Positions 7,587 through 10,775 of a DNA stretch of 64,000 nucleotides are shown here, one piece after another (within the stretch, counting starts at the first letter, position 1; each line of letters opens with the position of its first letter). The notes under the pieces were generated by a model. The model was not told the DNA's origin. It made no database searches and saw nothing but the letters and a program-made list of their open reading frames with translations. The DNA comes from Octopus sinensis (Eukaryota). The translations under genes and the position numbers were made by a program. Location: the NCBI RefSeq assembly GCF_006345805.1, contig NC_043023.1:12648001-12712000 (forward strand), in the 5' to 3' direction.

Positions 7587-9082
7587 AGAGAAAATTTGAA
7601 CGATTAATCTATTTTTTAAACTATTTTATACTAAAAAATAAAATACGCAGAACGGGCACTCGCGAATATAAACAAACATGTATGTACGTATACGTATGTA
7701 TTTATGCATATATATGTATTATTATATATACATATATGTGTGTGTGTAAGGGTGAAAGAAATTGAATATTAATTAATAACATCAATTTCGTATGGAGTTT
7801 GGCGTTTGGTTCAGCAAATTATGTTTTCGATATACTCTACCGATGATTCGAAAATGATTTGTAAGTAAAATTACACAATCTATTAACGATGAAACAATTG
7901 TACAGAGTTAATCCATTTTTTCGTTATTTTTCATTTGTCCTGCCCGCTTACGTTCTTGGCATGTTGAATTAATGCTTGAGAACAATTCTTTAGTGGCGGA
8001 TTCCCTTTGCGGATCTATTTCTAGCGTTAGAGTGACCACATGTGGTCCTTCTCTTATTACTTGTATGTATATATATATATGTGTGTGTGTGTGTGTGTGT
8101 GTATACAAATATATTTGCAGTGAATCTTGCACGCATGATGTAGATTGGATCCACCATAGCCAAAATTTTAATTAACCCTTCACCAAACTTTTTCCCACGG
8201 CAGAACAATAGAGAAATCTCTATACAGAATGTTGTAAAAGTTTCAATGCCTCAATGGATTCTGACCCCTGCAAACATGGACATTAAATGGATGACAGTGT
8301 TGATGTTGTAAGATTTGCAATGTTGAATTACTATGTCGTTTAATGATTCTCTTTATCTCACTGCTTGTTTTTTTTTCTATTTCAGAATATAACATCCTGT
8401 TGATATGAAAGAAATTACTTCATTCAGATGTGCCTCTGATATTTTATCAGCTCCCATCAACCAAAGGAAGATGATATATTTATAAGGAGCATTCATCAAT
8501 ACATCAAACTCATCTTATAAAGGAAATCTGTGAAAAACAACAGCAAAATATTTCTTCTGGACGATGGAATTAACAGCAACAATTTGAAGTCTTTGCTGTC
8601 TGGAATATAGAGGAGATGATTGTTTTACAGGTTAATTAAGCTTGGATGACTTTACAAAGGGGTAGACAATTGTCACCTCTTGATTTAGATATTAAGCAAA
8701 ATCACAGATGAAAGAAGCATAGCATTAAATTATTCTCTGAAAATAGCAACACAAATATATTCATAGAATTGAATTTTTTTCCTATTTCATAATATCATAC
8801 CATGTTGATTTAAAAGAAATTTCTTCATTCAGATGTGTGTCTGATATTTTTATTGACTTTCATCAATTAAAGGAAGACCATATATTCATAAGGCACGTTC
8901 ATCAAAAGATCAACTTCTTTATATATAAAAAATCTTGGACAAACTATGGGGAAATATTTCTTCTGGATGATGGAATTAAGAGCAACATTTTTTTTGCCAT
9001 CTGGAATGTAGAGATGATGATGAACCTACAGGTTAAGTTTGAGTAACTTTACAAAAGAGTTAACCAATTTATATCTTCTGTT

Positions 9083-9946
9083 TGTGCAGGTCACTACTGT
9101 GAGAGAATGATTTACCACAGATATTACAATGATATGGCTTCTCTCCTGTATGAATACGTTTGTGACTGATCAAATTGCTATTATCAGAAAATGTCTTACC
9201 ACAGATATCACAGTGATATGGTTTTTCCCCAGTATGTATACGTTTGTGTTTAGGTAAGTCACTACTGTAAGTGAATGATTTACCACAGATATTACAACAA
9301 TATGGCTTCTCTCCTATATGAATACGTAGGTGTCTGGTTAAATGGCTATTTTCAGAGAATGATTCACCACAGATATCACATTGATATTGCTTCTCTCCTG
9401 TATGAGTACGTTTGTGCCCTTTTAAGAAGAAGGCTGAGAAAATGATTTGCCACAGATATCACACTGATATGGCTTCTCTCCTGTATGAATACGTTTGTGC
9501 CCTTTTAAAGAAGAAGGCTGAGAAAATGATTTACCACAGATATCACAATTGTATGGCTTCTCTCCTGTATGAATACGTTTGTGATCAGTTAAAATGTTAC
9601 TTCTAGAAAATGATTCACCACAGATATCAGATTGATATGGCTTCCCACCTGTATGAATATGTTTGTGCCTTTTTAAAGAAGAAGGCTCAGAAAATGATTT
9701 GCCACAGATATCACACTCATATGGCTTCTCTCCTGTATGAGTACGTTTGTGCCCTTTTAAAGAAGAAGGCTGAGAAAATGATTTACCACAGATATCACAA
9801 TGGTATGGCTTCTCTCCTGTATGAATACGTTTGTGATCAGTTAAAATGTTACTTCTAGAAAATGATTTACCACAGATATTACAATGATGGGGCTTTCCTC
9901 CTGTATGAGTACGTTTGTGTTTAGGTAAATCAGCACTTCGAGAAAA
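9083..9946 (-). pseudogene. Inverted block of about 10 C2H2 fingers inserted into the leader of ZF2
   Basis: The reverse complement reads [49 protein letters not shown]... with no ATG and one frameshift. It is flanked by a ~70-bp direct duplication of leader sequence (about 9015-9082 and 9947-10014). Confidence 0.9.
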
Positions 9947-10148
9947 TGATGATGAACCTACAGGTTAAGTTTGAGTAACTTTACAAAAGAGTTAACCAAT
10001 TTATATCTTCTGTTTTAGATATTAAGCAAGATCACCAATGAAAGTAACATAACATTTAATTATTCTCTGATGCATTTGAACACAAATATTCATAGAAATG
10101 AAACAGATACTATCATTGTGATATGTATAACGAAATTATTCTCTCATT

Positions 10149-10775
10149 ATGAATAATTCAACTAAAGCAAAAATCTCTGATAAAAGAGAGAAGCCATATC
10201 ACTGTGATATCTGTGGTAAGTCATTCTCTAAAACTGGTAATCTAAGAATGCACAGACGTGTTCATACTGGAGAAAAACCATATCAGTGTGATATCTGTAG
10301 TAAATCATTTTCTGAAAATGGCACTTTAACTCGTCACAAATTTATTCATACTGGGGAAAAGCCGCATCAGTGTGATATCTGTGGTAAATTATTCTCTCAA
10401 ATTAGTCACTTGACTGAACACAAACGTGGTCATACAGGAGAGAAGCCATTCCATTGTGATATCTGTGGTTAATCATTCACTATAGTCATTTGACTAGACA
10501 TATACGTATTCATAATGGGGAAAAACCATATCAATGTGATAACTGGTGAATCATTCTCTGAAATTAGCAATTTCACGAGACACCTACGTATTCATACAGG
10601 AGAGAAGCCATATCATTGTGATATCTGTGGTAAATCATTCTCTCACAGTAGTGACTTGCCTAAACATAATCGTATTCATACTGGGGAAAAACCATATCAT
10701 TGTGATATCTGTGGTGAGTCATTCTCTCAAAAGCGCCACTTAAGCACACATCTGAGTATTCATACACAGGTCTAA
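10149..10775 (+). pseudogene. C2H2 zinc-finger array (ZF2), about 7 fingers, premature stop and frameshift
   Basis: The 107-aa ORF ends at TAA 10470-10472 inside a finger (CDICG*). The remaining fingers, ending [10 protein letters not shown], continue after indels. Confidence 0.9.

Follow-up and report, generated by a model that had tools for sequence, protein, structure and literature searches.

An inverted zinc-finger fragment upstream of a disabled C2H2 array: probably a young structural mutation with latent double-stranded RNA potential

Introduction

Zinc-finger sequence lies in both orientations at one place in the DNA analysed here, a stretch of 64 kb that we call the window. All eight C2H2 arrays in it are on the plus strand, and the only minus-strand finger cluster is a block just upstream of the array ZF2. 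Does this block turn a broken gene copy into an RNA regulator of its whole family, as the original prediction proposed, or is it a structural mutation of the locus? We consider it likely that the block is a real and probably young structural mutation, and not a demonstrated regulator. The lesion is probably neutral, with latent potential for double-stranded RNA (dsRNA), neutrality being our prior expectation. The insertion, its duplication and microhomology, the broken host copy, the folding potential and the complementarity to paralogs are observed; the mutational mechanism, the promoter and splice sites, transcription and all effects at the RNA level discussed below are inferred from the sequence. 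The features on which the argument turns are collected in Table 1.

Table 1. Features of the ZF2 unit, with their positions in the window.
Feature	Position	Strand	Basis
Promoter-plus-first-exon-like conserved module of the ZF2 unit	6329-6728	+	Motifs read by eye, conservation
Left copy of the 70-nt target duplication	9014-9083	+	Exact repeat, junction text
Inverted paralogous C2H2 finger array fragment	9084-9945	-	Translation, periodicity, absence from the window of a collinear donor
5' arm of the predicted RNA stem, inside the block	9147-9850	+	Minimum-free-energy fold
Right copy of the 70-nt duplication	9946-10015	+	Exact repeat; text unbroken in the ZF4N, ZF5, ZF6 and ZF7 units
ZF2 sense array, 7 finger units, disabled	10149-10775	+	Translation
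3' arm of the predicted RNA stem, ZF2 array	10152-10766	+	Minimum-free-energy fold, controls

The inverted block and its host copy

About 10 antisense fingers had been placed at 9083-9946, and translation of the minus strand bears them out with the limits adjusted to 9084-9945. The block is 862 nt long, which corresponds to 10.26 units of 84 nt (~10.3 C2H2 finger units), and both termini fall mid-finger. Its minus-strand reading runs from (RSADLPKH) to (HSSDLHK). The frame is open apart from one frameshift of 1 nt at ~9424, where the block has AA vs AAA in sister units, and a Cys-to-Ser change at ~9630. Additionally, three fingers (252 nt) are duplicated within the block, 9420-9671 and 9672-9923 being 93% identical. 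Downstream of the block, the ZF2 ATG (10149) follows after 204 nt and the first ZF2 finger unit after 240 nt, in keeping with the predicted ~200-250 nt. The finger types had been assigned to ZF3, ZF5, ZF6 and ZF8 instead of ZF2, and the block translation agrees, with helix types present in those four arrays and absent from ZF2. When the block was translated conceptually and searched against proteins, generic zinc-finger proteins were returned, with a best identity of ~62%. The left-junction sequence gave 0 matches in metagenome scans, and an Rfam scan of the whole window resulted in no family.

By its reading frame, the host copy is a pseudogene, with one stop codon (TAA at 10470-10472) and two frameshift deletions, of 4 nt in the unit at 10440-10519 and of 2 nt in the unit at 10520-10601. 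Its longest ORF encodes 107 aa. Six of the eight arrays are broken; the frame is intact in the other two, ZF5 (294 aa) and ZF6 (602 aa). Other units are damaged in other ways: the ZF3 unit contains a transposon, ZF4 is interrupted by a reverse-transcriptase insertion, and ZF1 has lost the acceptor region by deletion. The inverted repeats of the transposon in the neighbouring unit are far better than the ZF2 hairpin arms. The cluster evolves by frequent structural damage, as the ZF2 insertion shows.

A HMMER search with ZF5 was dominated by giant poly-zinc-finger proteins, at no more than 59% identity. Exact look-ups of the ZF2 ORF, ZF5, ZF6, ZF7, the transposase and the reverse transcriptase returned no record. 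The best matches of the transposase and reverse transcriptase searches were 65-74% identical and lay on anonymous contigs; the named matches belong to molluscs (Elysia; Octopus vulgaris at 57%), crustaceans, a cnidarian and a lancelet. At most, this points to a marine invertebrate, with a weak hint of a mollusc.

A private insertion with a duplicated target

The original prediction described a direct duplication of ~70 bp around the block. The two flanking copies agree at 70 of 70 positions. Junction microhomology, predicted as GTTT on the left and ATGAT on the right, can be read from the text of both joints. On the left, the flank ends in CTGTTT and the finger text reads ACGTTT/GTGCAGG, so that GTTT is common to both; on the right, the finger text GAGAAA/ATGATttacc meets the flank ag/ATGATgatg, and ATGAT is shared. 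These microhomologies (4-5 nt) were derived from the finger consensus of sister fingers and not from the donor.

The insertion at ZF2 is established because the block-free site aligns with the paralogous units. When the flanks were joined without the insert (8400-9083 + 10016-10200), the construct aligned gap-free over 869 nt with the ZF5, ZF6, ZF7 and ZF8 units at 96.4-97.2% identity, and over 778 nt with the ZF4 N-terminal unit at 97.0%. Overall, the joined flanks are collinear with five paralogous units, with 0-2 gaps. On these alignments, in which the empty site is defined by paralogs and not by alleles or orthologs, the 932-bp insertion is private to ZF2. Terminal inverted repeats, poly(A) and transposon sequence were all absent from the insert.

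Donor and origin of the insert

The donor had been predicted to be another paralog, and the comparison with the other arrays upholds this. No array of the 64-kb window is a collinear donor, the best match being ZF8 at 82.7%. Taken finger by finger, the best matches range from 81 to 98% and form a mosaic over ZF8, ZF6, ZF3 and others; ZF2 is the closest array for the last partial finger alone (94%). The donor must therefore lie outside the window or have been lost.

A template-switch origin, also part of the original prediction, is supported by the target duplication, by the microhomology at both joints and by the absence of transposon or retrocopy hallmarks. The footprint fits microhomology-mediated template switching or templated insertion, and FoSTeS/MMBIR-type rearrangements and polymerase-theta-type templated repair provide the frame for comparison. 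While the DNA was being replicated or a break repaired, an end lying in the intron immediately before the ZF2 finger exon would have switched template onto the opposite strand of another tandem member of the zinc-finger family. About ten fingers' worth of paralog sequence (862 nt) would then have been copied before a switch back to a point 70 nt behind the point of departure, leaving a target copy, inverted fingers and a second target copy in that order, with 4-5 nt of microhomology per joint. The 70-nt duplication could equally come from the fill-in of a staggered break.

Three other sources of the block were rejected. Copying or excision from ZF2's own array is contradicted by a complementarity of at most 87% and by the absence of an excision scar of the expected size. 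A retrocopy or processed pseudogene does not agree with an internal fragment that ends mid-finger, has no A-run at either end and is flanked by a 70-nt duplication. Capture by a DNA transposon of the Pack-MULE or Helitron type was discarded on the insert termini, which are finger sequence without terminal repeats.

Promoter-like module and predicted splice sites

The original prediction had put a promoter at 6437, upstream of the block. The module there, 2.6 kb upstream, has twin TGACGTCA motifs at 6455-6462 and 6488-6495, a TATAAG at 6507-6512 and a donor-like GTGAGT at 6590-6595. The window contains 12 TGACGTCA sites vs 0.8 expected, all inside the module and one pair per unit, and the module with its pair was found in six of the eight units. 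Its 221-nt core is 99.1-99.5% identical among units, the ZF2 copy being as well kept as those of the intact genes, and the full stretch listed in Table 1 is 97-98% invariant across five units. From this conservation and these motifs, a promoter function upstream of the block is plausible. The module sequence gave 0 matches in metagenome scans.

The insertion lies 3 nt upstream of a conserved predicted acceptor, TTTTAG/ATATTAAG, which directly follows the right copy (AG at 10017-10018, predicted exon start at 10019). The left copy holds a branch-point-like TTAAC and a polypyrimidine run; where it joins the initial bases of the insert, a new acceptor-like site arises, TTTGTGCAG/G, with its AG at 9088-9089. 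If used, this good CAG/G acceptor could bring the block into mature RNA. Neither AATAAA nor ATTAAA occurs on the plus strand between the arms; therefore, co-transcription of both arms is quite possible.

The predicted hairpin and its reach into the family

According to the original prediction, a transcript across 9-10.8 kb would form a long imperfect duplex, and the minimum-free-energy fold of 9015-10775 (1761 nt), computed with ViennaRNA, is in line with it. The folding energy was -798.5 kcal/mol (z = -33), whereas shuffled sequences gave -405.6 +/- 11.8 kcal/mol, the same segment with the block flipped to sense -393.5, ZF5 -399.6 and ZF6 -390.6 kcal/mol. The two arms share 490 pairs (461 Watson-Crick and 29 G-U), and 80% of the bases of the 3' arm are paired with the 5' arm. 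From the 57 helices of the fold, eight have at least 19 bp and five have at least 21 bp; the longest, of 42 bp, pairs 9195-9236 with 10677-10718. The ungapped complementarity of the arms is 76-87% over 126-305 nt, and in the best 40-nt window 39 of 40 positions agree. Since ZF2 retains the conserved promoter-like module, any primary transcript of it would carry both arms and fold into an imperfect stem of ~600 bp.

Pairing in trans with paralog mRNAs had also been suggested, and the complementarity that it needs extends to all paralogs. Of the 842 21-mers in the block, 527 find a perfect antisense site in one array or more, 99 of them in at least five arrays and ten in all eight; per array, 77-338 21-mers match perfectly. 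The perfect matches are concentrated on the Cys-knuckle and His-linker framework. The longest perfect antisense runs are 113 nt with ZF8, 48 nt with ZF6 and 47 nt with ZF5.

Discussion

Two of the alternatives concern the insertion itself. A chimeric join in the assembly could have placed a foreign inverted finger segment here, in a region where 84-nt tandem repeats and 8-kb units that are 96-97% identical make assembly difficult and where the single frameshift of the block is a homopolymer-length difference. However, such an artefact needs two precise chimeric joints, a return exactly 70 nt back and microhomology at each joint. The flanks are otherwise perfectly collinear with the paralogs, and the block, at a complementarity of no more than 87%, is not a fold-back copy of the local array, which makes an assembly error very improbable. 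Alternatively, the insertion may have been the primary inactivating lesion of ZF2, its 3' splice region split, duplicated and buried in a hairpin so that correct splicing was lost, with the stop and the frameshifts following later. The position of the insert next to TTTTAG/ATATTAAG, the competing TTTGTGCAG/G with the same upstream 70 nt and the three disabling changes in ZF2 would agree with this order of events. The splice sites involved are predictions, however. The 70-nt copies remain identical, with three lesions already present in the array, which suggests that some of the decay, at least, is older than the insertion, although this argument is weak because the paralogous copies of the segment differ by only 0-1 nt. 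We regard the primary-lesion order as unlikely, albeit less so than an artefact.

The remaining alternatives concern what an RNA from this locus would do. If the locus is transcribed, its intramolecular duplex may be hyper-edited from A to I by ADAR, with the intronic block in the role of a large editing-complementary sequence towards the finger exon. The ZF2 RNA may then be retained in the nucleus or destabilised, perhaps as a mere by-product. Putative dsRNA has been defined by a reverse-oriented copy within 2 kb at an identity of at least 65%, or by more than 95% identity over at least 40 bp (PMC5625713), and elsewhere by at least 80% identity over at least 20 nt (PMC9989829). The arms of ZF2, with their 76-87% over 126-305 nt and their best window of 39/40, fall within the sequence ranges of the first study and also within that of the second. 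The intact promoter-like module and the absence of a poly(A) hexamer between the arms point the same way, as does the editing of repeat-derived dsRNA, which is general in metazoans and exceptionally high in octopus (PMC5625713). On the other side, ZF2 is a pseudogene, so editing of its RNA would have no protein-level effect, and a selected role is not implied. An ADAR substrate is thus possible though doubtful. The main idea of the original prediction makes the locus a precursor of endo-siRNAs of the hpRNA type, its pseudogene-derived hairpin silencing the entire zinc-finger family in trans. The layout does resemble newly born Drosophila hpRNAs that arise beside their targets, within transcription units that already exist (PMC10317233). 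An extended inverted repeat capable of folding into an intramolecular stem was found, and so were perfect antisense targets among the 21-mers in all eight arrays. Near-perfect complementarity of the arms, as described for the tHMG hpRNA cluster of Drosophila (PMC10317233), was not, the arms reaching 76-87% with only five helices of at least 21 bp. Furthermore, the inverted block is single-copy with no sign of conservation, and its host is a pseudogene in a cluster full of other lesions. Two independent surveys of molluscs found no siRNA-type Dicer or Argonaute and no endo-siRNA signature, so that a dedicated endo-siRNA pathway appears to be absent there (PMC12479628, PMC11114477). We give this precursor hardly any credence, and if the host is a mollusc, ADAR hyper-editing is the likelier fate of this duplex.

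The reading that we prefer, a structural mutation that is probably neutral, has observations counting against it. The ZF2 module is well kept, no poly(A) hexamer separates the arms and the complementarity to the paralogs is extensive. Moreover, the insertion falls 3 nt from a predicted acceptor, duplicates the branch and polypyrimidine region and creates a new acceptor. A more far-reaching reading has the block retained for the pairing of its transcript, in cis and in trans, with the conserved finger framework of the whole cluster, tuning the family via ADAR editing, dsRNA-dependent retention or antisense piRNA production, in an animal lineage that perhaps lacks a canonical endo-siRNA pathway. 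We attach only minimal weight to this, but if true, the block would be a family-wide RNA regulator hosted by a pseudogene and seen just as it was born. Were the block transcribed and active, one random template switch in a tandem cluster would have created, at a stroke, an RNA able to recognise all members of a transcription-factor family in fast expansion; such birth events have been documented so far mainly in Drosophila testis. For a structural mutation of the preferred kind, the likeliest RNA fates would be ADAR hyper-editing, nuclear retention or disturbed splicing as by-products, and not a selected function in family-wide silencing. At present, the locus is valuable as a cleanly resolved templated inverted insertion with paralog-defined empty sites, and as a concrete place to look for hyper-editing.

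Comparison with known systems

The insert shares with template-switch or templated-insertion variants an inverted segment from a homologous template, 4-5 nt of microhomology at both joints, a target duplication on either side and the lack of transposon hallmarks. It differs from them in that no donor was located in the window to define the distance to the template and the exact breakpoints.

Mouse oocytes reportedly produce endo-siRNAs from inverted-repeat pseudogenes, as Tam and Watanabe are said to have described in 2008. The human psiPPM1K is another case of pseudogene-derived endo-siRNA (PMC3616710). ZF2 has in common with the mouse and human cases a pseudogene with an inverted duplication and potential dsRNA against the founder family. 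Like the Drosophila hpRNA loci (hp-CG4068, Nmy/Tmy and the newly born D. simulans hpRNAs; PMC10317233, PMC10292708), it also has an inverted fragment of a young, expanding family near its potential targets, within an existing transcription unit and with many perfectly complementary 21-mers. Unlike them, its stem is far less perfect (76-87%), its second arm belongs to a pseudogene array instead of being a dedicated copy, and its host possibly has no siRNA-type Dicer or Argonaute. The mouse and human cases rest on sequenced small RNAs and target de-repression, whereas the ZF2 block, set against these and against the Drosophila loci, is known from sequence alone.

Inverted Alu pairs and young repeats that serve as ADAR substrates (PMC5625713, PMC9989829) likewise have homologous segments in opposite orientation, here less than 1.5 kb apart in one likely transcription unit, with an identity and length in the range of putative dsRNA. 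The arms of ZF2 differ in being sequence of a coding-gene family and not mobile elements, one of them intronic and the other exonic.

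Inverted finger block in the ZF2 unit

The window contains a tandem cluster with a unit of about 8 kb, and each unit ends in a single-exon C2H2 zinc-finger array with a period of 84 nt. The eight paralogous plus-strand arrays were numbered ZF1 to ZF8 along the window (see the table). Exactly one cluster of minus-strand fingers was detected in the window, at 9106-9861. Most arrays are followed by 61-63-nt tandem repeats (GGTGGCACGTAAAAAGCACC...), which lie directly after ZF2, ZF3, ZF7, and ZF8; further copies occur between units and, for ZF1, ZF5, and ZF6, 1.8-2.1 kb downstream. 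The repeats are found in both orientations, account for long spurious minus-strand ORFs, and gave no Rfam match.

Coordinates of the main features of the zinc-finger cluster (window positions)
Feature	Position	Strand	Remarks
ZF1 array	~1267-2500	+	
ZF2 array	10149-10775	+	
ZF3 array	22176-23600	+	
ZF4 array	29355-30796	+	
ZF5 array	36564-37448	+	
ZF6 array	44187-45995	+	
ZF7 array	52136-53314	+	
ZF8 array	60562-62116	+	
Promoter-like module, ZF2 unit	6329-6728		400 nt; two palindromic TGACGTCA sites, TATAAG, GTGAGT donor-like site
Further module copies	15883-16101, 33744-33964, 41023-41243, 49555-49775, 57401-57621		
DNA transposon	17232-20463		~3.2 kb; between promoter-like module and finger exon of ZF3
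Transposase ORF	18405-19358	-	IS1595/ISXO2-type (Merlin-like) DDE; intact, 317 aa
Reverse-transcriptase ORF, ZF4 unit	27591-29318	-	575 aa
61-63-nt tandem repeats	4569-5029, 10990-11303, 14078-14353, 23851-23992, 25751-26000, 27128-27334, 39446-39661, 47986-48207, 53573-53713, 62331-62497		

The antisense fingers noted ahead of ZF2 were confirmed, as the minus-strand translation of 9084-9945 comprises 10.26 finger units, from (RSADLPKH) to (HSSDLHK). The only frameshift in this block, of 1 nt, is at ~9424, and one Cys has been changed to Ser. The flanking duplication of about 70 bp is a perfect 70-nt direct repeat (9014-9083 = 9946-10015). For an empty-site test, 8400-9083 was joined to 10016-10200, and the resulting 869 nt were compared with the remaining window. 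The regions upstream of ZF5, ZF6, ZF7, and ZF8 aligned over 869/869 nt with 0-2 gaps and 96.4-97.2% identity, and the ZF4 N-terminal unit aligned over 778 nt with 97.0% identity. All paralogs are uninterrupted at the junction (...ttatatcttctgttt/tagATATTAAG). Therefore, ZF2 gained 932 bp, consisting of 862 nt of inverted fingers and the second 70-nt target copy, and by comparison with the paralogous units the block is an insertion.

Origin of the insertion

The microhomology noted at both joints was confirmed. GTTT is common to the left flank (CTGTTT) and the finger text (ACGTTT/GTGCAGG), and ATGAT is common to the finger text (GAGAAA/ATGATttacc) and the right flank (ATGATgatg). A duplicated target, together with a homologous segment in inverted orientation and microhomology on both sides, is the classic footprint of template switching (FoSTeS/MMBIR, templated end joining). 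The original prediction of such an origin is thus supported, and we infer that a replication or repair template switch onto homologous finger sequence would have produced both the inverted insert and the duplicated target. The anatomy of the insert argues against retroposition and transposon capture: both ends fall mid-finger, and terminal inverted repeats, an A-tail, and transposon sequence are all absent.

No collinear donor was found in the window; the best collinear match reached 82.7% (ZF8, 60804-61660). The best matches of individual fingers (81-98%) switch among ZF8, ZF6, ZF3, and ZF7, with ZF2 matching only the last partial finger. A fold-back copy or transposed piece of ZF2 was rejected because complementarity between the ZF2 array and the block does not exceed 87% and no excision scar was found in the array. 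That the two 70-nt copies are identical hints at a recent insertion, although this is weak evidence because the segment differs by only 0-1 nt in the paralogous units.

Damage across the cluster

Of the eight arrays, the reading frame is intact only in ZF5 (294 aa) and ZF6 (602 aa). ZF2 is disabled by a TAA stop (10470-10472) and by the loss of 4 nt from its fourth finger unit and of 2 nt from its fifth; these are not homopolymer-type changes, and the longest ORF is 107 aa. Frameshifts are present in ZF3, ZF7, and ZF8; they could be genuine decay or, for some of them, assembly indel errors. In ZF4, a reverse-transcriptase ORF splits the N-terminus (ATG at 26897) from the array. At the start of this array (29428-30083), one 84-nt finger unit has recently been amplified (91% matches), and the amplified stretch carries a repeated in-frame stop (*SADVPKH). 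The ZF1 unit lost its acceptor region through a ~190-nt deletion at ~1228. This deletion took out the equivalent of ZF2-unit positions 8987-9083 plus 10016-10108, with the 70-nt segment and the acceptor-like site among them; a neighbouring unit was therefore damaged independently at the same spot. The inverted insertion thus joins a long list of lesions in a birth-and-death cluster.

Promoter-like module and putative splice sites

The putative promoter and splice sites were picked out by eye, and the case for transcription is a motif-level one. Among the non-coding parts of the unit, the module is the most strongly conserved (97-98% invariant across five units). It is present in 6/8 units, with a 221-nt core 99.1-99.5% identical among them, and none was seen within the window upstream of ZF1 or ZF4. 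The window has 12 TGACGTCA sites against 0.8 expected, all 12 inside module copies, one pair per unit. The module probably serves these genes as a common promoter and first exon, and the promoter proposed at 6437 for ZF2 is plausible because ZF2 retains it. Directly upstream of the module, a 145-147-nt tandem repeat (15521-15861, 57089-57379; a single copy near 6300-6360) differs in copy number between units.

In the predicted gene model, the insertion lies at the extreme intron end, 3 nt ahead of the acceptor AG. The block could be exonised because the first copy of the duplicated branch/polypyrimidine region now leads into it through a new TTTGTGCAG/G acceptor-like site. No AATAAA or ATTAAA was found on the plus strand of 8867-11400. 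Every unit also has an old internal tandem duplication of ~400 nt (~76% identical; in the ZF2 unit, 8369-8773 versus 8774-9083 + 10016-10102). It doubles the acceptor-like motif TTTAG/ATATTAAGCAA (first copy ~8683-8698), and the two motifs may be alternative acceptors or belong to alternative 5'UTR exons.

Folding potential and possible RNA roles

The original prediction that a transcript across the block and the ZF2 array would fold into a long imperfect duplex was right. The predicted minimum free energy of 9015-10775 was -798.5 kcal/mol, against -405.6 +/- 11.8 kcal/mol for 30 dinucleotide-preserving shuffles (z = -33), -393.5 kcal/mol with the block flipped to sense, and -399.6 and -390.6 kcal/mol for equal-length stretches ending at the ZF5 and ZF6 stops. 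The predicted stem (9147-9850 with 10152-10766) has 490 pairs (461 Watson-Crick and 29 G-U) and includes 80% of the sense arm. Its 57 helices, eight of at least 19 bp and five of at least 21 bp, reach 42 bp, with one 87-nt bulge at a register slip of one finger. Ungapped complementarity between the arms is 76-87% (best 40-nt window, 39/40). Pairing in trans with paralogs also holds for the sequence: of the 842 block 21-mers, 527 match at least one array perfectly in antisense, 99 match at least five, and 10 match all eight. The shared 21-mers cluster on the Cys-knuckle and His-linker framework, and perfect antisense runs reach 113 nt in ZF8, 67 nt in ZF3, 51 nt in ZF7, 48 nt in ZF6, and 47 nt in ZF5. 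The modelled folding potential is supported; however, it is no argument for function, because any antisense family fragment would show the same properties.

We consider it probable that the block is a real, likely neutral templated insertion whose RNA effects are only latent or a by-product, and quite unlikely that an assembly artefact lies behind it. If the locus is transcribed, ADAR hyper-editing would be a more credible fate than silencing. The locus falls in the range that is used operationally to call editing-prone dsRNA (PMC5625713, PMC9989829). Hyper-editing occurs widely across metazoans and reaches an extreme in octopus (PMC5625713). Editing in vivo is nevertheless only a tentative possibility, and for the transcript of a pseudogene the simplest reading would be a by-product. 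These readings and the regulatory one below overlap, so their approximate probabilities need not sum to one.

A regulatory function of the block is unsupported and a priori unlikely, and we give very little credence to a selected role as an hpRNA-type (endo-siRNA-yielding hairpin) or family-wide silencer. The block is single-copy, and its second arm is a decaying pseudogene. Strong inverted repeats are not special in these transcription units, since the ZF3-unit transposon, which occupies the equivalent part of that unit and may still be mobile, has ~1-kb inverted arms with 96-99% complementarity and internal 117-149-nt tandem repeats, making it a much better dsRNA candidate. Moreover, what taxonomic hints there are suggest a marine invertebrate host, perhaps a mollusc, and two surveys report siRNA-type Dicer and Argonaute as lost in molluscs and other trochozoans, with no endo-siRNA signature (PMC12479628, PMC11114477). 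Drosophila hpRNA loci are defined by Dicer-2-dependent siRNAs and primary-transcript de-repression, and the arms of the tHMG hpRNA cluster are described as near-perfectly complementary (PMC10317233), whereas the ZF2-locus stem, at 76-87%, is much less perfect.
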